Origin: Hyphochytrium catenoides
Taxonomy: Eukaryota > Protista > Hyphochytriomycota
Reading direction: 5' to 3'
Length of the DNA stretch: 64,000 bases
NCBI GenBank assembly: GCA_900088475.1
Contig: FLMG01002637.1
Coordinates: forward strand, 1-64,000
In this document: piece after piece, positions 2,330-50,384 of the stretch
Position numbering within the stretch: the stretch's first letter is position 1
How the letters are laid out: each line of letters starts with the position of its first letter
Notes under the pieces: model-generated
The model's database searches: none
The model's input: only the letters and a program-made list of their open reading frames with translations
What the model was told of the DNA's origin: nothing
Translations under genes and position numbers: made by a program

Positions 2330-5300
2330 TTAGACATTCTCCACTCCGAGAGGCTGGAGCCCGTTCCTGGTAGGGGCTGCAGCTGGAGGAAATAACACTT
2401 GATCACCTTCTGGAGCTGCTCCAACCTTATGACTATTTCCCTTTTCCGCCGCAGAGACAGCAGCGTTCTGGGATGCCCGGATTCCCGAAGAGGCGCTGGT
2501 AGAGTTCTTGCGGTGAGTGATGAGAGAGGCTCTGTGCCCTGCTCCCGCTGGACTTGAGCTTAAGTCCATGATGCTACCTCCTCTGCTAGGGGCTGATGCA
2601 CTGGGGCGTTGTACGCTCGCCGTTGATGCTTTTTTTGTTGACGTTCTTGATTGTGGGTTCTTGTACAGGTAGAAGAGCTTTGGAGTCATTACTAGTACCA
2701 CGCAGATCAACGCCACCAGGCTGCAGGACACAGCCAAAAGGAGAACCCTGATGGTGGGTGCGGTTCTGATGCCGAGAGTCAGTAGGAGGGTCAACCCACC
2801 CATCAGAGTGGCGTTGTAGAGTCCAATGGCCAGCTGCTTGGCCTCCGAATAGTCCTCGACAATGTGCCAAGATTTTACTGCGAGGTATATACCGACGCCC
2901 AGTACAAGCCCCTTATAGCTCAGCATCAGATACAGTCCACTATTATCCCCATAGTCGCACACTTGCCTTGGAACATTCCCCAGTACTTCTAGAAACTCGA
3001 AGGACGTCGTAGAAGTCATTTTGGATCCAAACTGCCAGCAAATAAGGATGACGACATCTACCAAGATGAACATCGACGTCTCCGATGCCACCCGAAGGTT
3101 AGATACGACGGTCCGCTTTAGAGCTTTGCCGCCAAACAGTGTGTACACGCGCTTGAGCTTCATAAGGAGCGGGGCAAACAGAGTAGAGAAGCTGAGGCTG
3201 ATGACCCAGGGTCTGCGCACACAATGGACACTATCATTGGGCCCCAGCAATGCAATGGAAGAAATAGTCAGGATAACGGCTCCAATGATGAAGAGGATAG
3301 TAAAGTTGACCTGTGACGCGACCAGGGCCTTGGAGTACCGATAGTAGAAGGTGAAGCCTAGGAATGGCAACAAGACCACGAGACACATGACCACCAGAGC
3401 GATGACTCCATAGCCCACAGAAGATCGTAGAGGCACAAATTCACAGCCAACTTCAATGTCCTCAATGAGATCTTGACCGCCCAGGCAGCTTCTGTTATCT
3501 TTCCCGCCTTTCCAAGCAAACCGCGCCACCATGGACTGTTCACGACACTCTGACAGCTGATAGACCATGTCCTCTCGCCCGCACGGAGGCTGTGGGGATA
3601 GAATGGAAGTTTGACCAATTGAAATGCTATTAGCGATGGGTCTTAGCGTAGCTTGCGCCAAGTCATGAGATAGCCCTGCCAGACTGTCGCTAAGGACATT
3701 CTCCATCAGCCATTCCAAAAACTTGGCTATATATGTTGCGCTTCCCTCTGCATCAGCACTCCAAACGCGCTTAACCACTAGGTTGTACTCGATAGTCAGC
3801 GGATAACATCCTGTAGCGGTAAGATCGTCAAAGATAACGGCGTACGGTGATATCTGGCGTACTGCCTTGCCTCCCGCGGATTCAATGCAACGACTCATGG
3901 ACGAAAGGAAGGGAACGAGTTCCGTCCCATTGGTGTTAGCAAGAGCAATGATCGACAATTTTTCGATCGTTTCTTCTTCAGGTCTGGTCCACACTGCTCC
4001 AAAGGTGCCTAGGATACTCTTGACGGCTCCACGTAATGCCCGCTCCGAGGTCATTTCTATCACGTTCGTTCGGAAGGTGCGCAGGAGGTTGAGATTACTA
4101 GTTTTGGAGAAGATAGCACTGAACTCCACGCTGATTCTTGAAAGGTAGCTGCATATGCACTTTGATATCTCACTCGCGCCGACATCCACCACTATCGTAA
4201 TGTTGACGCTGGGTAGAGGACATCCTGGGTTTAGCTCTCTGAGTTTAGCGTCATCCCATCTGACGATGTTTCCTAAGTAAATATCTACCAATAGTTCTGG
4301 TGTAACAGTCAGTTTCTGCACATCTCCGCCTAAGTTGGCGATAAGGGCAATAGTTCCTACAAAAAGCGGGGTGCTTGTGATTTTTTGATCCTTGACGAGG
4401 TCCATGATGATGTCTTTGGTGGCACCAAAGGCAAATCCCTTAGTGGACACAAGCCCCATTTCTAAGTCACCAAATGAATCAGAGACAAGGAACTCCCACA
4501 TTCGTTGACTCTTTTCATCCCAGCCGTGATACGAGACCAGGTTGAAGGGTGTCAGAACACTGAAGCTGTCGGCTACGACCTGCATTGAACTCTGCACGAA
4601 ACTTGGATAGCCGATGTGAAGGTCACTATCTGCGTGAGCGTCTCTTCTTGCTGACGACAAGGAGCACCGTCGCCCTGACCCCATACAAGTACATAGGGCC
4701 GAAGGAATCCCGACACAGTTTGGGACACACATGACAGTTTCTGAGATAGAGAAGACCAGTTTGTGACGGGAGAAGTCGTTGAGCATGGCGTACCCAGAAG
4801 CTCTGGCCATCTCCACTACCTCCCGACTTTCAAATGTCCACCGTAAGAAGTCCACCAAAGCTTTGCGATGCTTGCAATCATCACGATGGGTTCTTCCTCG
4901 TACTGCTAGATAGGAAATGGAGTTGATGGGCCAACCTGCCGGAGCAATTGTGTCTACGGCAGTGACATTGTATCTGCTGTCAAATATGCCTTCAATGGCC
5001 ATCAAGGCGTTCATAATGGTCTCGACAGAAGCGCTGACTGTGGCATTCTCCTTGTTGATGAGCTTTGCGCTTGTCAAACCCCGCTCCATGGCCTCCGTGT
5101 GATACATAAACGTCAGTGAATAGGGTAGCATCGAAAGCTGCAAGAGTCCAACATAGGAGAGGTTTAGTTATCTGGTGGTGAGGCTAGTAAGGGGCGAAAG
5201 TATACGTACTGCAGCGGTTCTTCCATCTAGGCCTTCTGGGGAATAAAAGACGCGGGTATCGTTGCTTTCATGGCAGGTAATGCTTCTGTAAGGGATGCCA

Positions 5301-5971
5301 GGGGACTTGGGTGCTTTTGTGACTGTCCCTTGACACCATTTTGGGAATGCCGATCGTCCTATGCTCTCCTTAAAGCCAGTACTGAATTCACTCAAGGCGG
5401 CAGTGAAGACATCGGTGACACCGAGTGCAATTCCTGGAAGGATCAGCTTTATTGGCTCTGGAGGCAAGGTTATCATAGGATTCAAAGCGACAATGGCTGG
5501 GTCATCCCATTGCAAAATGAGACCTTGGAAGATGTCAGCCAGGACTTTTCTTGAAAATATTATTGTCTCTCCCTCTCCCAGCTCCGCAATGTTGATGATG
5601 GGAACCACAGCTGTGACCGCCAAAGGGATTAGGAACAGATCTCGATAAACCTTGAAATCTTCCAGTGGTACCATGTAGTCTAGCACAGCAAAATGGATAG
5701 TGCCGTCTACCAGCAGCTGCTTCCGTGCCAACATATCGCCATTGCTAATGAAGGCAAGCTCGACCTCTGGGAGGTCCGACGACTTCGTAGCAACGCTGCT
5801 GTACATTCGTGAGAGCCGGGGCATCAAGGAGCCTGTGAGGGTTCCGCCGGAGGCCTTCAGCTTGGACCTCTTGGTACCTGCAGCGGCAGAGAAAAATGGT
5901 CGAGAATGATTCTCGACGCCCAGAGATATGAAGGATAAGGTCAGGCACGCTATAAAGGCGGCGGGCCCCAT
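2330..5971 (-). CDS. PstS-like PBP x2 + Cys-rich module + class C (7tm_3, GABA-B-like) GPCR, copy 1; exons 5971-5210 and 5137-2330 (~1189 aa)
   Basis: A phase-0 intron 5209-5138 (GTACGT...TTGCAG) joins the 267-aa and 937-aa ORFs. PstS-like motifs: ASGGTL, HFAVLD, PLAVTAVVPIINI, VLADIFQG..WDDPAIVALNP, GWPI.S.SYL. Second PBP: PLFVGTIALIANL, DIYLGNIVRWDD, CYPL. Seven hydrophobic helices with class C motifs ASQVNF, LLMKLKRVYTLF, YSEAKQLAIGLYN, PKLF. Confidence 0.9.
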
Positions 5972-8356: not shown

Positions 8357-11300
8357 TTAGGCATTCTCTTTTCCCGCTAGCGAAGAATCAGGGCCAGGTA
8401 TGTCAATAGAGTGATTTAGGGGAGCGCCAGTTACATCCTTCTTTGACGACGAGCTTTCCGCATTCTTTGAAGAGATAGTCTGTCCCTGTTGGGCTGGGTG
8501 CTCCTTCAGAGCTACAGCACCTATAGTAGCAGAGCTCTTCCGATTATGGAGTGATGATGATGATGGATTAACTGCAGAAGTGGAAGATACCTCCAGCATG
8601 CTCCCCCTAGCTCGGTTCGATCCTGTTGTTGGCCGCGGCTGGTCACCAGTAGCAGTCTTCTTTGTCGACGTTCTGGAATGTGGATTCTTATAGAGGTAGA
8701 ACAGTTTTGGAGTCATCACAAGGACCACACAGATGAAGGCAACGAGGCAACAGGATGCTGCCAAGAGAACAACCTTTGTGGTAGGGCCAGTAGTGATGCC
8801 CAGAGCTAGAAGGAGGGTTAAACCACCCATCAGAGTGACGCTATAAAGCCCAATCGCCAATTGTTTGGCTTCCGAATAGTCTTCAACGATGTGCCAAGAT
8901 TTCACGGCAAGATATACTCCTACCGCCAGGACTAGACCTTTATAAGCCAGCATCACATACAACCCTGCGTTATCACCATAGTCACAGACTTGTCTTGAGA
9001 CCTGACCCAGAACTTCGATGAACTCAAAGTCTATTGTCGAGGTCAATCTGGAGCCGAACTGCCAGCTTAGCAAAATAGTGATGTCCGCCAGAATGAAAAT
9101 AAAGGTCTCTACGGCTACTCGACCGTTGGAAACTACGACGCGCTTGATCGTTTTCTGCCCGAAGAGAGTGTATACCCGCTTAAGCTTCATGAGGAGAGGA
9201 GCAAAAAGCAATGAGAAACTGATGCTCAAGACCCAAGGACGCCGCACACAGTTAAACTCATTGTTTGGTCCCAGTAAGGAAGTCGAGGAAGTCGTTAAGA
9301 AGATAGCTCCCACGATGAAAAGGAGGGTGAAGTTGACCTGGGAAGCGATGAGAGCCTTTGAATGCCGGTAGGTTGAATGTGAAGCCAAGGAAAGGCACAA
9401 GAATCAGAAGGCAGAGGGCGACCAAAGAGAACACAACGGAAGCCACAGATGAGTCTACGGGCACGTATTCGCAGCCGATCTCAATATCTTTGTATAGGTC
9501 CTGACCACCCAGGCAGGTCTTGTTGTCTTCGGCGCCCAACCATGAAAATCGTGCCACCATCGCTTGTTCTCGACATCCTGACAAGGTGTACGCTATATGC
9601 TCGCGGTTGCAGGGCGGCTGTGGAGTTAGGACGGAAGACATTCCGAGAGAGATGCTGTTCGCAATGGGCCTCAACATCGGGTACACCGTCTCATGTGGAA
9701 GGACCGAGAGACTCTTTCGAAAGTCACTTTTGAGGACCCAGTCTACAAATTCGGCAACTTTTTGCGCCTTTGAAGCGGAGTCGGAGCCCCAAACACGCTT
9801 GACCACAAGGTTGTACTCCTTAGACAACGGGTAGCACCCCAAAGAAGAGAGATCCTGGAACATGACCACATAAGGGGATAAGGGCCATACAGCGTTGAGT
9901 CCGAGCTTATCAAGACATCCTTCCATAGACGATAGAAATGGGAGCATTTCAGTGCCGTTAGACATGAAAGTAAGTACTGGAGTTACGAAGGTTGAGGCCT
10001 CTTCGGGTCTTGTCCACACAGCACCGAACGCCCCTGTCACACTCTCAACGGCACCACGCAGACCCCGCTCCGAAGTCATCTCAAGCACGTTGGGTCTGAA
10101 GGTTCGTAGTAGATTGAGGTTATTTGTAACTGAGAAAATGTCCCTGAACTCATTGCTCACTGTCGAAAGGTAGCTGCAAATTATTCGGGATATCTCAGTA
10201 GCTCCCACGTCAACCACCAGGGTAATATTGCTGTTAGGCAAAGCTAACGAAGGGTTCATCAGCTCCTTGAGGCTCGGATCATCCCATGATACGATTCTTC
10301 CTAGGTAAATGTCAGCCAGAACCTGTGGTGTCACGCTGAGTGTTGATACCGCGTAGCCTAGTAGGTTGAATATCAGCGCGACTGTGCCAACGAAGAGCGG
10401 GGTGATGGTAAGTTTTTTATCGACAGTCAGCTGTGTTATGAGTTCCCTGATTGACGCGGTGGAGAGGTAAGTTCTCGTGGACAGAAGCCCCATAGAGAGA
10501 TCTCCATACATATCTGACGAGATAAGCTCCCACATGCGCTCATCCTTTTCGCGCCACCCGGGGTAAGGGGTGAGATGGGAAGACGTAAGCGCTCTAAAGC
10601 TGTCTAGGATAACCTCCATCGAGCTTTGAATGTAATCAGAATAGCCTAAGTGGAGGAGGTTTTCTTCTTGATCCGCCGTCGCTGCTAGAGAGCACCGTCG
10701 TCCTGAGCCCAAGCAGGTGCATTGCGCCACAGGAACTCCAAAACAATTAGGCACACAAGAGACCCGTTGTGGCAGAGATGACACGATGCTCTGACGAGAA
10801 AACTCGTTCAGAACCGCAGAGCCGGATTCTCTAGCTAACTCCACGAAGTCTTGACTTGCGAAAGTCCATCGAAAGAATTCGACCAGTGCACTGCGTTTCT
10901 TACAGTCCCCAATATGCGTCCTCCCTCGTATGGCCAAATAAGAAACAGAATTGATTGGCCAGCCTAATGGAGCGGCCGTGTCCACCACGGTAGCATTGTA
11001 CCTTGCATCGAAGATGCGCCTTCCACAACCATCAAGGCGTTGGTGATAGTGTTCACGGAAGGGCTGACGACGTTGTCGACTTTGTTGATGAGCTGGACAC
11101 TTGAGAACCCACGCTCCATAGCTTCCGTGTGATACATAAACGCCATCGAGTACGGTAACAGGGTGAGCTAGTTGTACATGTAGAGCAAGGGGGCAGGGAA
11201 CTGTTAGAGACAACAATAAGAAAACAAGCTAAAGTTTAGGGTGAAGATTACCGCTGCAGTTCTGCTGTCGAGGCCTTCAGGGATATAATAGGTGCGCGTC

Positions 11301-12053
11301 TTATTTTCCTCTGTACAGGTCACCACTGCGTAAGGTAGTCCAGGTTCCCGCGGCTCCTCTGCGGCTACTCCTTGACACCATTTGGGTTGAGTGGAGCGTC
11401 CAATTGTAGCCCTGAAACCTGCACTAAACTCGCTTAGGGCCGTTGTGAAGACTTCAGTAACACCTAACGCGAGCCGAGGCAAGATGAGTCTAATGGGTAA
11501 TGGGCTCTTGCGGCGGAAAAGCTATTGTCGGATTGAGGGCGATGATGGCTGGGTCGTCCCACTGGACAATAATGCCTTGAAAAATGTCCGCCAGGACCTT
11601 CCTTGAGAGTGAGATCATATCTCCCTCTTCCAGTTCTGCAATGCTCACAACGGGCACGACCGCTGTCACAGCTAAGGGAAACACCATGAGGTCGCGGTAG
11701 AGCTTGAAGTCTTCAGGTGGGAGCATGTGATCCAGGACTGCAAAGTCAGTGGATCCTTGAATAAGTAGCTCTTGTCTCCTCCCTGCAATTGATCCACTAC
11801 CCTCATACTCGATGTCAACTTGCGGCAGATAGGACGAATTCGTTGCGACGCTACTGTACATACGGGCTAGCCGAGGGAAGAGTGGAGCGGTCAGGGTCCC
11901 TCCAGAACCTCTTAGTTTCCATCCACTGATAGCAGAGGGACCAATAGCTACATCAGAAAGGGCAACACTATTCTTCGCCGCAAGGTAGGTAAGTGCAACA
12001 ACCAGCCAGAGGCTGGCTGTCGCAATCCTATTGTCACACAATGTACCCCTCAT
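8357..12053 (-). pseudogene. PstS-like PBP x2 + class C GPCR, copy 2, frameshifted (pseudogene or consensus errors)
   Basis: Colinear with copies 1 and 3 across ORFs 12053-11490, 11482-11204, 11146-10964, 11216-9258 and 9400-8357. Same intron position (11251-11168, GTAATC...TAG). Frameshifts: 7-bp duplication taatggg x2 at 11491-11504, extra GC at ~11016-11019, extra base at ~9371. Confidence 0.85.
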
Positions 12054-17858: not shown

Positions 17859-20800
17859 ATGAGTTTCCCACCTCCTTGCCTGTTGTTCCACTCGTTTCTC
17901 CTCATTGCTACCGTTGTGCAATCTTATAATGCTATGGCTACCTCCCTGGCGGATATGGATCACCATGCAACGCTGAAAGGTGCTGGAGGATCGATGGGTG
18001 CCCAACTATTCTCTAGGCTTAACCGTATGTACGATAGTGCAGTACCTGATCTAGGTCTTCTCGGAGTAGATATTATTTACGAGAGTACGCAAGGGTCTGT
18101 TGCAGGGAGAGAGAAGCTGCTTGCTGAAGGTTCTATACATTTCGCTGTGGTGGATTACCAGCTGCCTCAATCAGACTTCAAATCCTACCGAGACCTCTTC
18201 GTTGTACCGTTTGTAGCCTCTGCGTTGGTCCCGGTAATCAACATCGCAGAGCTGGAGGATGGACAAAGGATCATCCTGTCGAGAGAGTTACTGGCTGGCA
18301 TATTTATGGGCACGGTCACTCGCTGGGACGATGCGGGCATTGTCTCCTTAAACCCAACAATAGTAGATCTACCACCAGAGCCCATTAGACTCCTCCTTCC
18401 CACTGGCACCCCCAAGAGTGCAGAGATCTTTGCACAAGCCTTGAGCTCTTTCAGCCCAGAGTTTGCAGGTACCGTGGGCCTGACCCTGAAACCCCGATGG
18501 TGCAATGGCGACGCTGTGTCCACAGCCGATCCTGGACTTCCATATAATACTGTCAATTGCAGCGAGGGCAATACCACCAGCAGGCTGTACTACACGGCAA
18601 CTGGCAAGGAAGGTTTAACTGCAGCCGTAAGTCCGGCCTACGCCTTGTGTGGCGTAGCTGTATTCATGCCGTCCATCGTTTTAATCAGGTCTTAGACTTC
18701 AGTTGATGACCGCAGTTGCGCCTCCTGTCGCTTTTTTTCTCAAACAGCAGTTTCGCCAATGATACTGACTTGACCTTTTCCCGTCACCACAGTTCACGAT
18801 GCTGCCCTATTCAATCACCTTCCTCTACTACAACGAGGCCATTGAACGAGACTTTGCAAGCGCCATGCTTATCAATAAGGCAAATGCTACTATTAGTGCA
18901 TCTGTGGATACTATCACCAACTCTTTACTAATGGCTGAAGGAACTTTTGACACGCGGTACAATGCCTCTGTGCTTGACACTGTCGCCCCACGCGGTTGGC
19001 CAATTGTCTCCATAGCTTACCTCACCATTCGGGGAAGGACACATTTGGGTGACTGTCAGGAACGAAGGGCCTTGGCCGAATTCTTTCGATGGGTTTTGGT
19101 TAGCCCACAATACGTTGAGCTTGCACATAGTTTAGGATACGCGGTGCTTAGCGAGCACTCCCGCAAAAGCATTGTGGCGGATATTGCCAGCCAGGTCTCC
19201 TGTGTGTCTAACTGTGTCGGTATCCCCAAAGCCCTGTGCTCCTGCATTGGGACTGGTAGGCGTTGTCGTAAGGCTGTAACACCCTCTCAAAAGGCCGAAG
19301 TGTTCTATCTAGGCTATCCTAGCTTCGTCGAGAGTTCAGTTCATGTTGTCCTGGATGGTTACAAGGGTCATAGCTCACATTCGGTAGGTAGGTATCCTGG
19401 ATGGAGAGAAGATAAAACTTTATGGAGTGCCATTGCCTCAGACCTCTATGCTGACATCAGCATGGGTTTGGTGTCGTCAAAGCAGATGTTGGCACATTTA
19501 GCGACATCACCCGAATCCTCGTCCAGCAGTCAAGATATACTTACTAACGGCGAGGTCGCCCTAACTCCTTTTTTCGTGGGGTCTGTGGGCATCGCTTTCA
19601 ACCTCAATTCCTTACGCATGGTTACTGTCACGCCCGACGTGTTGGCAGATATCTATCTGGGAAAAATAACTCTATGGAATGACCCAAGGATCCAGCAGCT
19701 GAACTCTGATGTATCTCTACCGCCCATCAACATCTCTATCGTTATCGATGCCGGGGCCCTGGAGATATCTGAAGTTCTCATCACATATTTGCGGAATGTC
19801 AGTCAAGACTTTCACGATGCCATGGATGCCAACAGTAACCTCAACCACCTGCGTACCTTTCGATCTCATGTCATTGAAATGACGTCTGAGCTGAGCTTAC
19901 GCGGGGCAGTAGCGGCCATAGAAGGAGCGATAGGTGGGGTCTGGATAAGAGAAGAAGACGAAGAAGATATCAATGTGCTGTTACTGCAGAGCGCCAGGGG
20001 CATCAAGATGGATCCGTTTCTCTCTTCCATACGGGCCTGTTTTGACGCTTTAGGCTTGCGTGCTGTCTATCCCATCAACCGCTTTGCGTCTATCTTTGAC
20101 AACGTCGCTAGAAACGATAGGGATTGTTGGCCGCTCGTTGTGGAGTATAATCTAATGGTCAAACGGGTGTGGAACGCGGACGGTGCTTCATCGACGGCCC
20201 AGGAAGTGGCAGATTTTTTACAATGGTTTATTGGGAATGATCTGCGGGAGGCCCTTGCTGTTTTAAGCCCAGACGTAGCGAGCTTCGTAATGTCCCCCAT
20301 CGCACAGACCATCTCTCTGGGTGAGGCTTCAATTCTGTCTCCTCAGCCGCCCTGTAGCCGAGAGCATATGGTCTATACGTTGTCCGCTTGCCATGAGCAG
20401 GTAATGACTGCGCGTATCAACTGGGCAAGTGGAACTGAGAGCCGAAGCTGCCTGAATGGTCAACCGTTATACGACGACATCGAAATTAGCTGTGATCATG
20501 TTCCTCTGGGCTCATCGGTGGCGTACGGGATCATCGCGCTCGTAGTCATGTCATCCGCCGTATTGGTCCCGTTCCTAGGTTTTACCTTCCATTATCGATA
20601 TTCGAAGGCCCTTGTAGTTTCCCAAGTCAACTTCACTCTTCTGTTCATCATGGGAGCTACGTTCCTGGTCATCTCCTCACTTTCATTGATAGGACCCAAC
20701 GACGAGACGAACTGCATAGTGCGTCCTTGGACACTCAGTATCAGCTTCTCCGTGCTCTTTGCTCCCCTTTTGATGAAGCTTAAAAGGGTCTACACCCTAT

Positions 20801-21582
20801 TTGGACAAAGGACTTTGAGGCGAGCCGTGGTCTCAAACCTTCGAGTGGCGGCTGAGACCTCTGTATTTGTTCTGATAGACGTTCTTATCCTACTATCCTG
20901 GCAATTTGGCTCAAAAATAAGCTCCACAACAGCTTTTGAGACTATAGAGATCCTTGGTGATGTTCCTAGGGAAGTGTGTGACTATGGGAACAATGCTGGC
21001 ATGATCGTTATGTTGACCTACAAGTGTCTGGTCCTCGGTGTTGGAGTGTACTTGGCGATCAAGTCTTGGGAAATTGTTGCTGACTATTCTGAGGCCAAGC
21101 AGCTAGCAATTGGACTGTACAACGCCACACTAATGGGCGGCCTAACGCTGCTTTTGACCATGGTGATTGATACATCCATCACCATCAGGGTGCTCCTTCT
21201 GGCTGTTTCTTGCTGTATGGTGGCACTCATCTGCGTGATACTGGTTATGACACCAAAGCTCTTTTACTTGTACAAGAATCCAAACTCTAGAACATCTACG
21301 AAGAAGGCATCAGCAGCGGGACACCACCCTAGCTTCTCCCGTCCTCCTGCTCGAGGAAGCGTCCTTGACATAAACGCTAATGTCAGACCGCAGCCCATAC
21401 TGTCAGATCCGACATCCACTACCGGCCCTGAGACTCCTGCACTTCTTTCTGACCCAGGTACCAAAGTTCAGCCCAACAAGACGGTGGTGGAAAGCGCCTC
21501 ATCTGTTGGGGAGGTAAATGATGGAGACAAAGTCTCATGCATGACAGGTCCTCGGAGGACCCTTAGCCCTGCGGTCCCTTGA
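17859..21582 (+). CDS. PstS-like PBP x2 + Cys-rich module + class C GPCR, copy 3; exons 17859-18626 and 18793-21582 (~1185 aa)
   Basis: ATG 17859 opens a signal peptide (MSFPPPCLLFHSFLLIATVVQS). Phase-0 intron 18627-18792 (GTAAGT...CACAG) at the same protein position as in copies 1 and 2. Motifs LKGAGGS, GSVAG, FAVVD, WDDAGIVSLNP, GWPI, DIYLGKITLWNDPRIQQLN, LLMKLKRVYTLF, YSEAKQLAIGLYN. Confidence 0.9.
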
Positions 21583-26769: not shown

Positions 26770-28323
26770 ATGGGCTCAATAAAATCCTTTATCAAAGCTC
26801 TCGGGGCCGCTGTGCTATTGCTCGCATCAGCAGTAGATGCTCGACCTAATGGTGCCCCACGCTGTGCCATTAACCCGGATGCAATCTCTGGAGCTCATCA
26901 GTCCCAACCAGTGGATCTTGGAGCTAAACTGGTGGCCTCCTCTGCGACGTACACTCCTGGGCAGGTTATGGAAGTTACCGTCGAGGGCCCTGCGGAGTGG
27001 AAGGGTCTTCTTTTATATGGCGCCCAGGGCGAAGCAGAAGTCGGTCCTGGCAAAGCCGATGGCCGCAAAGCTCACGTCGGAAAGTTCATGGAGATTCCGC
27101 AGAACTTCAAGGCCCAAGCTGTTGATATCTGCCAGACTGCGGGGATTACCAATGAAGCCGATGGCTCAAACCCGGTAGAAGCCTCAACTATCACTCACGC
27201 AAATGGCCAGGCTAAGGGTGGAAAGGTCGTCTTTAAGTGGCAAGCCCCTGCCAATAATGTGGGACCCGTCAGCATCGTTGGAGCAGTGGCCATGGGTGGC
27301 CCCGGTGGCAAATGGGGTGTTCTGAACCAGATTGTCCTTCAGCCTGCTGGCGGAGCAGCCAATGGTGCAGTGGGAGGTGTGGTCCAACAGACAGGAGCTA
27401 AAGTAGATGTGAATGGGCAAGCAGTCATTGACATCCTGCCTCCAGGCAGCGACTGTGGCTGTGGCTTTGGCAAGGCCACTCAGCAGCAAACTGCAGGGGC
27501 ACAGCAGCCCAACGGAGGTGTTCAGCAAACTACAATGGTCAACGGCCAACAACAGCAGCAGCAAGGCGGGGTGTCAATTCACGGAGCCTTTCAGGCTAAC
27601 ATCCAAGGTCCTTTCAATGGCTCTTTCGAGGAGTGGCTTATCCTCATGTTTGGCACTAGCGATTGGGGAGTCCTAACCCAGCAAGGCGGCGCGGTCGGCA
27701 CTACGGTCCACATTGGGAACTCCATGGGTTCGTCTTCTCAAGGTCCAATCGGCTCCAGCACAGGAATTAGCGCCGGAGGAGTGCAGTCATCTACAACGGC
27801 CGGTACTGCTGGTAATGCACCTCCACAGCAAGACTCTCCGTCCTCGGGCTCTGCCAGCACAGGTATTGCTGGTAATGCACCCTCAAAGCAAGATAGTCCC
27901 TCTTCTTCGGGTTCTTCCGGCTCGCCATCCGCATTACCGAGTGGCCCGGTTCAACAGCAAGGTGCTCCCGCAGGAGAGCCATCTCCATCGGTGAGTGTTC
28001 CAGCCATTCCTGGCGTTGGCGCTGGTGCCAGCCAACAGCAGCAGAGTGTAGAGTTGCCTACAGGAGGGGCAACCTCTGGTGCCTCAGCACCTAGCAGCAA
28101 CGCTCCTAGCAAAGCTTCTGGCGCCCCTGTTGGCTCCGGAGGGGCGTCCGCTCCCGCCGGAAACCCTATTCTTAACGCCGGTGCAGCTCAACAGGCTCCC
28201 GCAGCACCTGCCGGTGGCGCAGGCAATGTTGGAACGGTAGCTGTGAGCGACGACATGATTATCGACTCTAAAGACATCGTAGTGGAGGACACCTCGGGAG
28301 CTGGCAGGCGTCTTCGGCATTAG
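26770..28323 (+). CDS. Secreted Reeler-like domain protein with Gly/Gln/Ser/Pro-rich tail (517 aa)
   Basis: Signal peptide, then Reeler hallmarks RPNGAP-x-C...H, YTPGQ, WKGLLLY, HVGKF, STITH, FKWQAP, GPVSI. Intronless. Confidence 0.85.
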   Translation: MGSIKSFIKALGAAVLLLASAVDARPNGAPRCAINPDAISGAHQSQPVDLGAKLVASSATYTPGQVMEVTVEGPAEWKGLLLYGAQGEAEVGPGKADGRKAHVGKFMEIPQNFKAQAVDICQTAGITNEADGSNPVEASTITHANGQAKGGKVVFKWQAPANNVGPVSIVGAVAMGGPGGKWGVLNQIVLQPAGGAANGAVGGVVQQTGAKVDVNGQAVIDILPPGSDCGCGFGKATQQQTAGAQQPNGGVQQTTMVNGQQQQQQGGVSIHGAFQANIQGPFNGSFEEWLILMFGTSDWGVLTQQGGAVGTTVHIGNSMGSSSQGPIGSSTGISAGGVQSSTTAGTAGNAPPQQDSPSSGSASTGIAGNAPSKQDSPSSSGSSGSPSALPSGPVQQQGAPAGEPSPSVSVPAIPGVGAGASQQQQSVELPTGGATSGASAPSSNAPSKASGAPVGSGGASAPAGNPILNAGAAQQAPAAPAGGAGNVGTVAVSDDMIIDSKDIVVEDTSGAGRRLRH

Positions 28324-35260: not shown

Positions 35261-37545
35261 CTCTTCCCTGCGACGTCCCTTCGTATGTGGACGAAGGCGT
35301 CCTTCTTCTTCTCCGTCCTGCATAGCAGAATCACTTTTTTCTCCTCCTCTTAACCCTTTCACTAGAATCATAAAAAGGACCCCAGACGAAAGGCGCAGGT
35401 GGACCAGAAGAGAGTAGTCAAACAGCAAGACGAACATAGTAAAGATCTTGCATAGTAGTACGAGGCTGAGGAAGTCTAGCATCGTACTACTACTAAGCGT
35501 AAACCCCGTTCCTTCCTTCATTTGACCAGAACAACCAAAACCAACGGCTTCACTGCAACTCGACGTCTGGCAGACAGAAAGCGGAGCTCACAGAGACAGT
35601 CTTTCCTATGGTGATGTACTACTAGTATATCGTTGCAAGAACGATATTTTCCTTTTTTGTTGTGCTACGTCGTCGTCTTGGCCCGCCATGAGCCATGTTC
35701 GACTTGTTGGGTACCTGGAGTTGCGCAGAGTTGTTGCCTCCTAGAAGTAGATGTTCGAAGAGACATAACAACACCAACAACTGCCACTCCTCTTCAGACA
35801 ACGGACATGGCTGCCATCAAGAATGGTTAGCTTCATCAATATGCATGACGAAGCAAAGGAGTAAGAGATATAGTCTACTATGACTATAGCGGGAGGAGTG
35901 AGAAGTGGAGGCAACCTTCCCAAGCAGATAAAAAGCCAGCAAGTTCAGCCCCTTGATGTGGCTCTGGCCAGAGAAGAAAGGCACCGTCTACTCTGTTGTC
36001 TCTTCTTCATTCACCACTGCTACTGCGAACGAGTGATAATATGGACATCCGACAGACTAAAACAAAAAGATGGCCTTGTTGATTGGACTAACCATACTAG
36101 TAGAGATCGTTGCGGCTCCTCTACGTCAAAGTACCCGGCTGTGATGGGACTCATAAATAGCAGACACCTCTTCTGGTGTCAAGAAGCCCTTACTACGACG
36201 AAGACTGACGGGAGGCGATACCGCTTCTTATGCCTGTAGAAGTAGACTCTCTTCTCTCCTCCTCGGAAGCCTCTATCTATTATCCTGTAGAGGCCTGGAC
36301 CTCTATCAAGTACGGGGCTGTTCCTAGGCATATTGTCACTGCTTCTTCCCTCACAAGAGCAGTCTCCTCCTCCCATCAGTCATCATGGCTCTCTCAGCCT
36401 CTAACGATGTGAGGAGCTTGAGCCCACAAGCAAACGAAGGACTTGCACAAGAAGACGGAAGATCGACCCCTGTGTAACCTCAACCCGCGGACCCACTGCC
36501 TGCATATCAGGGGTGGGGGTGGGGGGTCAGAAGCTTTGCATGCTGCATGATATCTATAGATTTCACTTAACCCTTTGCTACTGTATAGAGCTGAACTGGG
36601 AAATATATTCTCGACAACCTTTGAAAGATTCCATCCCTACACCTCACTTCTGGTCACCCTCCCTGTCACACCCCACTCCCTCATCTCTTCTCTCCTCCCT
36701 TCCTTCCCTCCTCCTCAGGTTGCTTATAAAGACAAGGCTCTTGAAACGCCCCCACCACCACCCGAGGGAGGGAGAGCTGGCTGGCTGACTGACGGACAGC
36801 CTGACAGACGGGACGGGATGGGCTCTGGCTGACTGTAAGAGACATGACACCCGACAGCGAGAGCCTCAGTGCTTCCTCTTACACATTTCCTAGACCACTG
36901 GGACGAGCCAGAACAAAGCATTACGTAGAGCCGACTAGCCATGTCAAGCAGGTGGTCAAGCATTATGGTTTTCCTTCTTCTTCTTCCTTCTCTATCTCTG
37001 TCTGCTGTTTTCTTGTCCTCCTGCCCTCTGACCTCTCTCTCATTGCCCCTTCTAAGGTTCTTCCTCCTCTGCGTTGTTGTTCGCCTTTCTCTTCGCCCGT
37101 TGGCCTTATCTCGTACTCTATGTTGCTGTCTAGCATCTCACCATGCACCACGGGGTGCTTTCTTTCGCCATCTGGGGAACTGGCATGGCTGAGGATGGAC
37201 AGTCCCACGACTTCTGATTCCAGCAGGAAGATGTGGGAAGGAAGAACCGTGAAGGAAGCTGCCACCTACTCCGCTTACCGTTGTATCAAGGCCTGCCCTT
37301 CTGCTGCTCATGGTTCCTGAGAGGGCAAAGAAAATGAGGAGCTCGCCTCTCTCCCTCTTTTCCACTTCCATCAGCTTTCGCTCTCTGTTGATCAGAAACA
37401 ACAGACCTGGGAGGAGAGTCGTCCGATTGCAGAGAGGTCATTGTTCAATCTGCAGCCTTCCCGAGGTCTTGGTCGAAGGAGAGCTCGCACAGTTGTCACT
37501 AGACCCCGTCGAAAGCCAAGTCTACTTGGGAGATCAACCACAAAG

Positions 37546-38742
37546 ATGTTGTCTCTTGCCGCGACACAAAAGCTTCTCTCAATATGCGTCCTGGCTTTGG
37601 TCGCTTCAACATCTCCGCCTGTAGGCGCTCTTCCCACCGGCGCCCCAGCTTGCCATTATAACCCCGCAGCTATTATGAAGGGCCACGGTCCACCAGCAAC
37701 AACCCTCGAAGGCGCAAAAATCACGGTTACCCCGACAACCTACACCCCTGGACAGACATTAAAGGTTGTCATCAATGGCCCAGCTGGCTGGAAGGGTCTT
37801 CTGCTCTACGCAAGCAGTGCAGGGGCCGTTTCTTCAGGGGGTGCCTCCCCCATTGCCACCAATACTACCAGCGGCAGTACTAGCACCTCCTCCAGTGGAA
37901 AGGCCTCCTCTAGCAGCACCTCTTCATCATCGGGCACTGGGTACCGGCGGCTGCAGGTTACTGGCGGCGGGGGTGCGACGGGAGGCACTAGCGGTGGAGC
38001 CACTGGAGGTGCTACAGGAGGCACCACCGGAGGTGCTACGGGTGGTGCAGGTGGCGCCACAGGAGGTGCAGGTGGCGCCACAGGAGGTGCAGGTGGCGCC
38101 ACAGGTGGTGCAGGCGGTGCCACTGGTGGTGCTGGTGGAGCCACAGGGGGTGCTGGCGGAAGCACTGGTGGAGGAGCTACTGGAGGTACCACAGGAGGTG
38201 CAGGTGGTGCCATGGGCGGGACTAGCAGCGGTGGTGCTGCTGGGGGCAGTACTACAGGTAGTGCTCCACCAGCAGCCGGAGCAGCAGCTGGAGGCACGAA
38301 GAATCATGTCGGAAAGTTCATCAACCTTCCAGCCAAGTTCCGTCCTCAGGATCCTGCCAAATGCTCTGGGGCCAGCGTGAAGAACGAGGCCCTAAGCACA
38401 AGCGGTGCTTCGACCATCACTCATTCGGATGGATCCACTAAGGACAACACCATTACGTTCGATTGGGTTGCTCCATCTGCGGCATCAGGACCTATTACCT
38501 TCTCTGCTGTGGTCAATATGGGTGCTGTGCAGAGTAAGTGGATGCTGATGGAGGCGATGGCACAGCCCTCTGGCGGTGCGGGCGCCGGTGGTGGTGCTTC
38601 TGGAGCAAGTGATTCCACTGGTGGCACCACAGGCACCACTCCATCTACCTCTGCGGCCACTCAAGCAACCAACACCCACTGGTCTGTCTGCTTATCAGTT
38701 GCTGCAGTTGCGATCAGCGCTGTCTGTGCCGTTGTATTATAG
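37546..38742 (+). CDS. Secreted, probably GPI-anchored Reeler-like protein with internal Gly/Ser/Thr insert (~398 aa)
   Basis: ATG 37546 gives a signal peptide. LPTGAPAC..NP.AI..GH, YTPGQ and WKGLLLY, then an insert, then HVGKF, STITH, FDWVAP, GPITF. Ser/Thr stalk and hydrophobic C-terminus with no tail. Paralogue of 26770-28323. Confidence 0.85.
   Translation: MLSLAATQKLLSICVLALVASTSPPVGALPTGAPACHYNPAAIMKGHGPPATTLEGAKITVTPTTYTPGQTLKVVINGPAGWKGLLLYASSAGAVSSGGASPIATNTTSGSTSTSSSGKASSSSTSSSSGTGYRRLQVTGGGGATGGTSGGATGGATGGTTGGATGGAGGATGGAGGATGGAGGATGGAGGATGGAGGATGGAGGSTGGGATGGTTGGAGGAMGGTSSGGAAGGSTTGSAPPAAGAAAGGTKNHVGKFINLPAKFRPQDPAKCSGASVKNEALSTSGASTITHSDGSTKDNTITFDWVAPSAASGPITFSAVVNMGAVQSKWMLMEAMAQPSGGAGAGGGASGASDSTGGTTGTTPSTSAATQATNTHWSVCLSVAAVAISAVCAVVL
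38041..38160 (+). repeat. Coding 21-bp tandem repeat (GGAGGAT)n
   Basis: ggtggtgcaggtggcgccaca-like units repeated ~5-6 times. Confidence 0.9.
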
Positions 38743-41134: not shown

Positions 41135-42988
41135 TCATCGTCGACGGGCCTGCTTTTTACGGAATCTTGTGTATGGATCCAGCATCAGCTTCAGAATCTC
41201 ATTGTCGACAGGCTCCCAGAAGAACTGCTCAGCCATTTGTTCCCTAGAGGCAGAGAGAAGAGATTTTTTCATCGCATTGCTGATGTTAATCTCTAGCGGC
41301 ATACCATCCGCTATAAACGTTGCCATCATTTCCATAGAGGTCGCCAGTCGCTTATCTGCCGTCATTGATTTTTCGCGGAAAGCCATAGATTGGTCGTAAT
41401 AAATAAGCTTCTCGCAGCAGAACTCAGAGACAAGAAACGATTGAAACGTGGCTCGCGCTCCAATGGTACAAGTGTCAAGAAAGCTCTTAAGCTCTTTTGC
41501 GGAGTGCACCGGAGGAGACTCTGTCTTCTCCTCCACTTTGTTGTGGTCCCCTCCATGAATCTCCTTCCCACGTGGTTGAATATTCTTGTTGTTGCCCTTC
41601 TTCTCATTGGACGGTATGATGCTCTTCTCTGGCTTTTGTTGTTCATCTTCGGAAACGGGTAAAATTTGATGTCTTGACACCGAGGTTGAAGCGAGTCTTA
41701 GAAACCTCTCTTTCCACAAATGCCACTCATTGTTATATGAAGTGACTATCAGAGACACGCTGAAGACCCAGCTGTAGAGATGCAGGCCAAAGGCGCCGAC
41801 AATGGAGAGGAGATCCAGCAGATTGTAATAGAGCTCTGAGTCTGTCTCTTCGAGACTGGCCGGGACGAAAGAGTAGGTCGCTGTCAGTGCCATGGAAGCG
41901 GAGGCAGCGTCGAGCCGTCGGCGCATATGGAACGACTCTTTAACCTGAGGCAAGAGGACGAGCGGGCAAAGAATCCAGAGAAGCTGGTAGAAGACACAGT
42001 TGACTTGATCGAAAGAGGCCTGAGGAGGACGACAGTCAGAACCACAAAAATTTAGTACGCAAATGGAACCAGATAGAGGTTATGGAAGCCTAGAAAGACA
42101 TGTATGTAGGAGATGGTGTCGAACGGGAAAGGAAGAGCGGCAGGCAGACAAACCAATAGACCTAGAAAGAGACTTGAAGACCTTGATTGGACCGATGTGT
42201 GCACAGGCCTGGCATACCCATACAGTGAGAAGAGCAAGGGGCATTCTTCATCGACCACCTCAAACCCGCCGCAAGAAAGGAACTTATAAGTAAGACATGT
42301 CGGTCCTTACCCCTAAGCTCGTCTGCTGGCAATGCTCGAAGTCCGCATATGGTACTGTCCAGTCCTCAACCTCAAACACACTACGAATTACGCCCATCCA
42401 GCTCTCTCCCCATACAACCAACGCTAAGGGAACTAACAGCCATCTGCTCTCCAGCTTTTATCTGTGCCGCAATAGGAATGTCCGCGTGTTTCCGGCAGCC
42501 AAGTCCTGCTGGCACTTACTATCTAGATATAGCTTCACTGTGCAGTAGACCAACAGGAACGTGACTGGGAAGTAGATCGCGTCCCAGAAGAGAAAGGGGA
42601 ACCAGCAGGGCGTGCTTTCTGGCATAAAGTAATATGCCACGTAGGCCCATACCTGGAAAGGGATAGTGCATTCGATGAAGACTAACGCTCGGACATCTAG
42701 GAGGTAAAGCGGGTACGTCTTCCGCCTCCGAATGAGAAGGAGAATGCTAGGGATGGATACCAGAAACGCCGAAATACAGATAGCGAGGCAGGTTGTCGAA
42801 GCCGTGGCTGCAAGCAAAAGAGTAAACGATGAGGAAGTAACCTCTTCAGGGCTCCCGGCGGTACCGCTTGCACTGCCATATGAACTTTCACTGCTACTGC
42901 TACTCTCGCTCCCTTCACCGCCATCAGCAACAAGCACTGACGAGTCGAAGGAAAAGGAAGAAGACTCCTGCCACAGGCTGCTTATCAT
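41135..42988 (-). pseudogene. 7TM-RGS protein gene (exons 42988-42311, 42019-41135) with one in-frame TAA at 42460-42458
   Basis: The frame continues past TAA (…LLRHR*KLESRWLLVPLALVVW…) to a GTAAGG donor at 42310. CTGAC branch point and CAG acceptor at 42020 give a phase-0 join. About seven hydrophobic segments and VKESFHMR, then an RGS box FQSFLVSEFCCEKLIYY...FIADGMPLEINIS...EILKLMLDPYTRF. Confidence 0.8.
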
Positions 42989-49000: not shown

Positions 49001-49787
49001 AAGGAAGGTGACAGAGAAGTGAACGGTAGAGAGACAGAGGGACAGAAAGAGACAAGCAGACGCAAACAAAGGACACCCAAATGTACCATCAAAGGGAGAG
49101 GGTAGACGGAGACAGAGCGTCGGAGGAGATGAGAAAACCTGGAGAAGAAGGGCATTCAGAGAGAGAAAGAATCAGAGGAAGGGATGTGAATGAACGTTAC
49201 TCCCTCTGCACCGGATCTCCCCTATTTTCAGCCGCAGCTGCACCAAAAACTGCAGTATCCGCCTGGTCCTCTGACTCTGCCTCTCCCTAGAGACTTTGAG
49301 CTCTTGCTTGCAAAGACTCCTTTAGCATTCTGATTCTTGTGCATGGCGTTATGATCTTCCAAGTCATTGCACAGAGGAAAGAGCCGTTGTCCACCCCTGG
49401 TGGTATTGAAAAGGCTCAGGAGCCACTTGGAGCCAGCTCTTTTCCAACCATCACTATGATAGGAAGCCTCCTCTCCGCCCACGATCTGATCTGTCCCCAA
49501 ACTCCGCTTGCGCTTGTATAATAGTTCTTATGAGTCTTCCTCTTCAATTCCCACTCACTCTTCTACTCCTCTACAAAAGACCAGCTGAGGCGTGATAAAA
49601 AGCAGTCACAAGTAATAGCGAAACCCCTCGTAGTGTGACTGTTCACCCTCACAGCCTGCTAAGTTTCACTCACAGCCGGGCTGTCAGCCGTCACTCATCA
49701 AATTTCCGCCTACTGGCCACCTCTCACCAATCTACTCTCAACCAGTGTAACAAAGAAGAAAGCACGTCGTTCTCTCAACCACAGACG

Positions 49788-50384
49788 ATGGCACTTCTCA
49801 ACAGCACTAACGCTCTTAGCCTTGGCACTAAGGCGGCAGTACCCACACCACGCCGCCGCCATCTCAACCGCCAGCGATGCATCGTTGAAGGATGTCAAAA
49901 GTTTGCTAGAGGATTGGAAGGTGTCTGCATCCGCCACGGTGGCCAGGGCAACAAACTCTGCCAGGTCCCAGGATGCATTCACCAAGTACGCAAAGGAGGC
50001 GTCTGCGTAAAGCATGGCGCTGAGAAGAGGCTCTGCAGCAAGCCCAACTGCAACAGAACTCTCTACTCTAAGGGTTTATGCTTTGGCCACCACCGTTCCC
50101 ACTTTGGCAAGAGCTCTCCTACCAACAGCCAGTCCACAGCTGTTCAGTCTGCACAAGTCCAAGCCCCTCTCGCTTTCAGATCACCTGCCGATGAACTCTT
50201 TTTCCAACTCTTCGATGTAGAAAACCATGGCCCCGCTATTGACCATGAAGCAGTTCTCTCAGCCTACGAGGGTGCACTTCTGAAGAGTACACCCGAGGTT
50301 TGCTTCTCCGTGGAGGAGTCAGTGTTCATGGACCTCACCAATATCTTCACTGCGCCCCCAAGTGATGCGGTTTTTGTTTTCTAA
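49788..50384 (+). CDS. Protein with three C-x4-C-x9/10-C-x2-H zinc-finger repeats (WRKY19-like zinc finger type)
   Basis: CIVEGCQKFARGLEGVCIRHGG, CQVPGCIHQVRKGGVCVKHGA, CSKPNCNRTLYSKGLCFGH. First ATG at 49788. Acidic/hydrophobic C-terminus. Confidence 0.85.
   Translation: MALLNSTNALSLGTKAAVPTPRRRHLNRQRCIVEGCQKFARGLEGVCIRHGGQGNKLCQVPGCIHQVRKGGVCVKHGAEKRLCSKPNCNRTLYSKGLCFGHHRSHFGKSSPTNSQSTAVQSAQVQAPLAFRSPADELFFQLFDVENHGPAIDHEAVLSAYEGALLKSTPEVCFSVEESVFMDLTNIFTAPPSDAVFVF

Follow-up and report, generated by a model that had tools for sequence, protein, structure and literature searches.

Probable loss of the canonical phosphate site in clustered tandem-PstS class C receptors of Hyphochytrium catenoides

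Little is known about the ways in which microbial eukaryotes detect phosphate and other nutrients outside the cell, and receptors that join tandem PstS-type binding domains to a class C seven-transmembrane (7TM) core are the most obvious candidate phosphate sensors. Three paralogous receptor genes of this kind are clustered in the first 64,000 nucleotides of contig FLMG01002637.1 of Hyphochytrium catenoides (assembly GCA_900088475.1; this whole stretch, positions 1 to 64,000, is referred to as the window), and they raise the question of whether such a receptor still recognizes phosphate. Each gene has two exons and encodes a signal peptide, an outer PstS-type domain (PBP1), a Cys-rich linker, an inner PstS-type domain (PBP2), a Cys-containing stalk, and a class C 7tm_3 core; copies 1 and 2 lie on the minus strand and copy 3 on the plus strand. 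A first-pass annotation had proposed that the canonical phosphate-binding motif is lost in every PstS-type domain and that the pockets differ between the paralogues. Our analysis indicates that the window copies are probably no longer high-affinity orthophosphate sensors, as judged from the residues that should line their pockets.

The phosphate ligands of PstS are T10, F11 (through its amide), S38, D56, R135, S139, G140, and T141. This set is restated for the homologous Synechocystis PstS1 (PMC13614923). The numbering of the mature E. coli protein (T10, F11, S38, D56, R135, D137, S139, G140, and T141) was confirmed on the K-12 pstS gene, and the lobe-II stretches of the window proteins were aligned without gaps to E. 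coli VVRRADGSGT, by phmmer against solved PstS proteins, and to the family relatives, with conserved flanks. At positions 10/11/38/56/135/137/139/140/141, PBP1 reads T L D D P I L G V in copy 1, T L S D P L L G V in copy 2, and S M S D P G P K S in copy 3. Compared with bacterial PstS, lobe I of PBP1 retains the equivalents of T/S10 and D56 in all copies and of S38 in copies 2 and 3. In copy 1, S38 is replaced by Asp (SNGDMLA, 5726-5746, minus strand), which confirms the GDMLA reading of the first-pass annotation; its D56 and T10 lie at 5672-5692 and 5834-5854 (minus strand). The retained half of copy 3 spans 17979-18161 (plus strand), with S10 in GAGGSMG (17979-17999), S38 in TQGSVAG (18087-18107), and D56 in FAVVDYQ (18141-18161). 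Beside D56, the Gly-Ser of PstS is replaced in PBP1 by the hydrophobic pair Val-Leu/Val.

In contrast, R135, D137, S139, and T141 of lobe II are all lost from PBP1. R135 is Pro in the three copies, S139 is Leu or Pro, and T141 is Val in copies 1 and 2 or Ser in copy 3. The corresponding loops are LILPGIALGVT in copy 1 (5414-5446, minus strand), LILPRLALGVT in copy 2 (11456-11488, minus strand), and LLLPTGTPKSA in copy 3 (18390-18422, plus strand), in which the R135-x-D137-x-S139-G140-T141 clamp has given way to Pro, Gly, Pro, Lys, and Ser at the five named positions. All the peptides quoted in the first-pass annotation were found where it had placed them, the copy 3 loop falling inside its interval 18385-18435. 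The loops of copies 1 and 2 are identical at 8 of 11 residues, and copy 3 shares only 2-3 of 11 with either; by their predicted lining there are two pocket types rather than three, copies 1/2 and copy 3. The proposed difference between paralogues is thus borne out for copy 3 against the other two and not between copies 1 and 2, and the suggestion of a separate ligand for each copy finds no support here: copies 1 and 2 have almost identical loops, and the frame of copy 2 is broken in the assembly used.

PBP2 has diverged further and lacks nearly all the ligand residues of bacterial PstS. At the same nine positions, it reads S F (R/E) S D G (S/T/L) E I in all copies, and the former Arg motif is acidic at 135 and 140 (D-x-G-x-(S/T/L)-E-I). 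The motif is VVDVGASEIS in copy 1 (4163-4192, minus strand), VVDVGATEIS in copy 2 (10188-10217, minus strand), and VIDAGALEIS in copy 3 (19741-19770, plus strand), where R135 is changed to D and G140 to E, and AlphaFold2 places the segment at a strand-to-helix turn. The predicted site is acidic, which goes beyond the mere difference remarked on earlier. The register was taken from the AlphaFold2 secondary structure, which puts Ser at position 10, the S38 site on Arg or Glu, and the D56 site on Ser. We preferred it to the register of a global hhalign, in which the PBP2 counterparts of S38 and D56 fell within an insert specific to copy 3. Neither PBP1 nor PBP2 carries the eight ligands of the D-type PstS proteins, and PBP2 retains only the Ser at position 10. 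These alignments support the view that none of the six domains has an intact canonical PstS pocket; to call it lost in each of them overstates the case for PBP1, where the lobe-I half remains.

These changes occur in domains that share the fold and the sequence family of bacterial PstS (E. coli, PDB 1IXH/2ABH, PF12849), which both window ectodomains match with phmmer E-values of 1e-10 to 1e-13, although the window domains, unlike the bacterial protein, are in tandem and fused to a 7TM core. The exons were searched separately, and spliced PBP1 joins were used only for alignments and trees. PF12849 (PBP_like_2) was detected in each exon 1 (39.3 bits in copy 3, 38.0 and 30.2 bits in the other two, cut-off 27), and PF00003 (7tm_3) in each exon 2 over nearly the whole profile (94.7 bits in copy 3, 106.4 in copy 1, and 99.5 in the remaining copy, cut-off 33.5); by this profile, the 7TM cores are those of G-protein-coupled receptors of class C. 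Exon 1 of copy 3 matched solved PstS proteins with an E-value of 7e-13 (8ODS) and of ~2e-10 for E. coli PstS, and the PBP1 piece encoded by exon 2 aligned weakly to the C-terminal third of PstS proteins.

PBP2 gave no Pfam call at E<0.01 in any copy, and its fold was settled by phmmer against the PDB, hhalign, and folding. In copy 3, this domain matched Yersinia PstS (E 2.7e-12) and E. coli PstS (~4e-9), and the family PBP2 profile aligned end to end with a profile of canonical PBP1 and E. coli PstS (probability 100, E 4e-52, 314 columns). The AlphaFold2 model of copy 3 PBP2, built from a 45-sequence family alignment, had a mean predicted local distance difference test score of 90.0 and a predicted template-modelling (TM) score of 0.88. 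The top 20 PDB matches of this model in Foldseek were all PstS or PhoX phosphate binders, and its TM score against E. coli PstS was 0.72 (query) and 0.78 (target). PBP2 is therefore predicted to be a complete PstS fold. A Cys-bracketed insert (W-C ... P-Y ... C) near PstS position 175 (e.g. 18480-18600) was also observed in PBP1 of the window copies and of the relatives P0151, P0029, and P0066; it is lacking in E. coli PstS and in most other relatives, and probably makes up an additional lobe-II loop stapled by a disulfide.

The wider family indicates how this state arose. A word-index protein search with the copy 3 ectodomain returned nothing at E<=1e-3, and an exhaustive representative search with copy 3 exon 2 returned 3,710 matches at E<=1e-3, mostly through the 7TM core, the best being 32% identical. 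The relatives came from metagenome and transcriptome sources (JGI, TARA, EukProt, and Logan). PstS-like domains were present in 57 of the best 150, nearly always two in tandem before the 7TM core. The domain order of the PBP_like_2 and 7tm_3 receptors of Spizellomyces (SPPG_06488) and Plasmodiophora, and of P0151, P0017, P0029, and P0037, is identical to that of the window copies, which by these alignments are members of a tandem PstS/7tm_3 family of protists, algae, and early fungi. Many members of this family hold the whole PBP1 pocket, whereas the window copies do not. When nine positions were scored per domain, the complete pocket (T/S-x-S-D-R-D/G-S-G-T) was found in PBP1 of at least 16 relatives, and it is complete in P0151, a full-length member of the best-hit cluster.

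PBP2, on the other hand, is degenerate in all the canonical-pocket relatives, often with R-x-S-D-T (Asp at the Gly140 site), so that its degeneracy is, as far as the aligned residues tell, family-wide and not peculiar to the window locus. We also observed that family PBP2 domains (those of P0003-P0042 among others) often keep Arg135 with Asp for Gly140, whereas in the window copies and P0151 position 135 is Asp and position 140 is Glu or Asp. A carboxylate at the phosphate position could make the PBP2 of this family 'self-liganded' and permanently closed.

A maximum-likelihood tree was built from PBP2 and 7TM only (45 rows, 746 columns, unrooted). Copies 1 and 3 paired with a Shimodaira-Hasegawa-like approximate likelihood-ratio support of 100, and P0151 was their sister at 99. 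The other pocket-less proteins fell in two separate places: P0026 and P0039 grouped next to P0029, which has the canonical pocket, and the rest formed a clade of 11 members. This tree requires at least three changes in the state of the pocket. The canonical state must be ancestral, and the window state a loss, because the canonical residues match bacterial PstS residue for residue. The loss is derived because the nearest relative, P0151, and many others keep the full pocket, and replacement of the clamp predates the local duplications because Leu-Pro at 134-135 is common to all three copies. Taken as a whole, the residue comparison shows a derived loss of the predicted canonical PBP1 site in the window lineage.

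We favor the explanation, with a probability of roughly 55%, that these paralogues have lost high-affinity orthophosphate recognition, that the PBP1 flytrap closes on some other small ligand, and that PBP2 relays this event to the 7TM core. The ancestral receptor of the family combined a PBP1 with the complete bacterial PstS pocket and a degenerate PBP2, probably a ligand-blind relay. In the window lineage, the lobe-II clamp (R135, D137, S139, and T141) was replaced before the local duplications, T/S10, S38, and D56 of lobe I stayed, and the genes remained under purifying selection. PBP1 may still work as a Venus flytrap that closes around some other small ligand, with the hydroxyl/carboxylate triad of lobe I pressing it against a changed lobe-II wall; this wall would be hydrophobic in copies 1 and 2 and formed by Pro, Lys, and Ser in copy 3. 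PBP2 and the stalk could transmit the closure to the 7TM core and on to a G protein. The first-pass annotation had likewise suggested that the receptors sense something other than orthophosphate; the derived loss of the canonical pocket in genes that are still constrained speaks for this, and a change of ligand is plausible.

Several points weigh against this explanation. The PBP1 pocket was read from sequence in a domain that is split by an intron, and the nearest relative is ~32% identical, so the timing of the loss is loosely bracketed. The synonymous divergence (dS) is saturated between all copies, which puts selection on the pocket itself beyond measurement. No RNA runs containing the locus were found. 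The loops of the former pocket are no better conserved than the scaffold, and 'no ligand at all' would fit this as well as 'new ligand'. A scan for basic replacements of R135 revealed window-specific invariant Arg residues in PBP1 at PstS positions 21, 67, 236, and 263. Finally, by analogy with SphX, a phosphate binder with Pro at this site, the loss of R135 alone would be no proof of lost phosphate binding.

This last protein brings in a different possibility. SphX is a solved S-type protein that has Pro at the canonical Arg site and binds phosphate with the help of its retained Ser-Gly-Thr, of water, and of an Arg that another part of the chain supplies (PMC13614923). The replacement of the canonical lobe-II Arg by Pro is common to the S-type binders (Synechocystis SphX and C. 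perfringens PBP-1; PMC13614923) and to all three window copies. The window receptors might thus still be phosphate or oxyanion sensors, of low affinity or altered selectivity, if main-chain amides, the triad of lobe I, the Ser141 and Lys140 of copy 3, or a recruited Arg, as in the S-type proteins, made up a new site. SphX is a precedent for this, since it relies for phosphate binding on Arg231 and Asp89 from other parts of its sequence (PMC13614923); moreover, copy 3 keeps S10, S38, D56, and Ser141 and gains Lys140, copy 2 has Arg136, and the four invariant Arg residues offer basic groups to such a site. However, SphX keeps Ser-Gly-Thr at 139-141, lacks an Asp56 equivalent, and uses an Asp-Arg-Thr triad, whereas window PBP1 keeps Asp56 and has lost Ser139 and Thr141, with Leu-Gly-Val in copies 1 and 2 and Pro at 139 in copy 3, and so does not match the S-type pattern either. 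The retained D56 makes PBP1 D-type, and R135 is the sole cationic ligand in D-type proteins. The hydrophobic changes beside D56 and in the loop would also disfavor a dehydrated anion site. For these reasons, we regard residual phosphate sensing as unlikely.

We also examined the divergence between the copies. The 7TM core is the best-conserved part, with 71-75% identity and a non-synonymous divergence (dN) of 0.16-0.21, compared with 50-65% and 0.25-0.42 for PBP1, 43-56% and 0.34-0.53 for PBP2, and 31-39% and 0.71-0.86 for the C-terminal tail; the statement that the 7TM cores stay very similar holds in this relative sense. The per-domain dN/dS comparison suggested earlier was run and gave, where dS was finite, 0.05-0.17 for the domains and 0.41 for the C-terminal tail (copies 1-2), with little power under the saturation noted above. 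For this reason, dN, identity, and loop-versus-scaffold comparisons were used in its place. The intact frames of copies 1 and 3, together with these ratios, support the view that both are still constrained.

In the canonical relatives, the four pocket loops show 58% pairwise identity, against 32% in the remaining domain. In the window, the corresponding values for loops and rest were 0.69 and 0.63 between copies 1 and 2, 0.31 and 0.50 between copies 1 and 3 (Fisher p 0.07), and 0.38 and 0.54 between copies 2 and 3. In these alignments, the window loops have lost the extra conservation seen in the canonical relatives, and the replacements are not a chance pattern, given that those relatives conserve the same loops at 58% against 32% elsewhere. 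The loop values would fit relaxed constraint as well as diversification.

Such a pattern is also what would be expected of ligand-blind co-receptor subunits that pair with a canonical-pocket paralogue and supply G-protein coupling or trafficking. Class C receptors work as dimers, in which GABA-B2 and T1R3 team up with subunits that bind the ligand, and GABA-B2, T1R3, and the tandem-flytrap sensor BvgS use a binding-protein fold without the canonical ligand site as a partner or relay domain. Those proteins contain type I (ANF/LIVBP-like) or other flytraps and not the PstS type. Both the ex-pocket loops, conserved no more than the scaffold, and the higher conservation of the 7TM core are in line with a co-receptor role, and PBP2 itself illustrates that a pocket-less PstS fold can be maintained family-wide. 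Nevertheless, T/S10, S38, and D56 are kept in copies 2 and 3, which is unexpected for an idle cleft, and we find this role doubtful as an account of the window copies.

A further alternative is that the cluster is decaying and that the loss of the pocket reflects relaxed constraint en route to pseudogenes. It is suggested by copy 2, whose reading frame is broken three times in this assembly. When the copy 2 region was searched with copy 1 by tblastn, the frame changed three times, and the causes were read from the DNA alignment: a 7-bp tandem duplication, CCCATTA, just upstream of the lobe-II loop (11491-11504), an insertion of 2 nt (~11016-11017), and an insertion of 1 nt (~9371), all on the minus strand. 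The loop LILPRLALGVT can be read only by stepping over the 7-bp duplication. When copy 2 was read with X at the three breaks, there was no further in-frame stop.

We aligned to this region the contigs from three publicly available DNA runs of this species (X1, the probable source run, and X2 and X3, from one sample). The 7-bp duplication was absent in the X2 contig and present in X1 and X3, the 2-nt insertion was heterozygous in X1 and X2, with paired 120-nt and 122-nt contigs, and the 1-nt insertion was absent from an X3 contig. Since X2 and X3 differ yet share one sample, this sample holds two haplotypes. Among the 40 haplotype differences listed for copy 2, 38 are coding, 18 of them synonymous and 20 non-synonymous, and the ratio of non-synonymous to synonymous polymorphism (pN/pS) is roughly 0.35. 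This constraint is weaker than that between the paralogues, yet not neutral; the data are contigs, some of low depth, and the value is indicative only. Copy 2 has the look of a broken allele that segregates in a heterozygous diploid, and not of an ancient pseudogene; an intact allele may exist. The weaker haplotype constraint and the frameshifts agree with decay, but for every frameshift there is a contig of this species that lacks it, and copy 2 has no other stops. Moreover, although dS is saturated, copies 1 and 3 have kept open frames of ~1,190 codons and their splice sites, and the measurable dN/dS values are 0.05-0.17. Decay of the whole cluster is therefore very improbable.

Beyond this locus, the favored loss of phosphate recognition with a change of ligand might be one instance of a broader process, in which a phosphate sensor has been re-used as a general chemoreceptor scaffold: the clamp would be shed and the cleft would diversify, as between copies 1/2 and copy 3, for non-phosphate ligands, with at least three independent shifts in the family. 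We propose this tentatively. If true, this re-use would be a counterpart, built on another binding fold, of the radiation of class C receptors for taste and pheromones in animals. Canonical and pocket-less members exist side by side, and their derived and recurrent loss amounts to a natural experiment, with the expectation that canonical members such as P0151 bind phosphate and that the window copies do not. Until a ligand is identified, the practical value is modest; the results also caution against labelling every 'PstS-GPCR' (G-protein-coupled receptor) a phosphate sensor.

The domain combination itself has been recorded before. PBP_like_2 with 7tm_3 was listed for Spizellomyces punctatus in 2012 (PMC3251606), '7tm3 + PBP' proteins of Plasmodiophora brassicae were described in 2016 and read as a transporter (PMC4815078), and other fusions of binding proteins with 7tm_3 are found across eukaryotes (PMC3971589). 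Atlas clusters with 7tm_3 and PBP_like_2 also come from green algae and amoebozoans. Our literature search found no paper testing a tandem-PstS/7tm_3 receptor or sorting the family by pocket state. The window genes are divergent members of a family that had already been catalogued.

The window has the features of eukaryotic DNA, with GT..AG introns and ~50% G+C. Copy 3 (plus strand) begins with ATG at 17859, and its exon 1 (17859-18626, GT donor at 18627) encodes the signal peptide and the first two thirds of PBP1 (PstS positions 1 to ~190). The intron (18627-18792, 166 nt, GT..AG, phase 0) is followed by exon 2 (18793-21582), which encodes the rest of PBP1, the linker, PBP2, the stalk, the 7TM core, and the C-terminal tail; splicing restores a continuous PstS alignment. 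Within exon 2, the last third of PBP1 extends from 18793 to 19206, PBP2 lies at 19321-20319 between the Cys-rich linker and the Cys-containing stalk, and the 7TM core occupies 20512-21264, followed by the tail. The frame is intact over 1,185 codons. Copy 1 (minus strand) consists of exon 1 (5210-5971), an intron of 72 nt (5138-5209), and exon 2 (2330-5137), which carries the PBP2 motif and the 7tm_3 match; its frame is intact over 1,189 codons. Copy 2 (8357-12053, minus strand) has the same architecture, with an intron of 84 nt (11168-11251). The single intron interrupts PBP1 at the identical phase-0 codon in the three copies. Unlike them, P0151 is encoded by one uninterrupted open reading frame (ORF; metagenome contig L002:1370-4471); the intron was either gained in the window lineage or lost in the P0151 lineage.

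Other ORFs of the window were also noted. At 41135-41953 (minus strand), ~20 kb from the receptor cluster, is an ORF that encodes an RGS domain (PF00615, E 1e-8), with another ORF (42458-42988) upstream. Two ORFs with Reeler domains (PF02014, E ~1e-6 to 1e-7), at 26770-28323 and 37441-38742 (both on the plus strand), probably encode secreted proteins. The ORF at 49635-50384 (plus strand) matches the WRKY19-type zinc finger (PF24906, E 5.6e-15) in two stretches.

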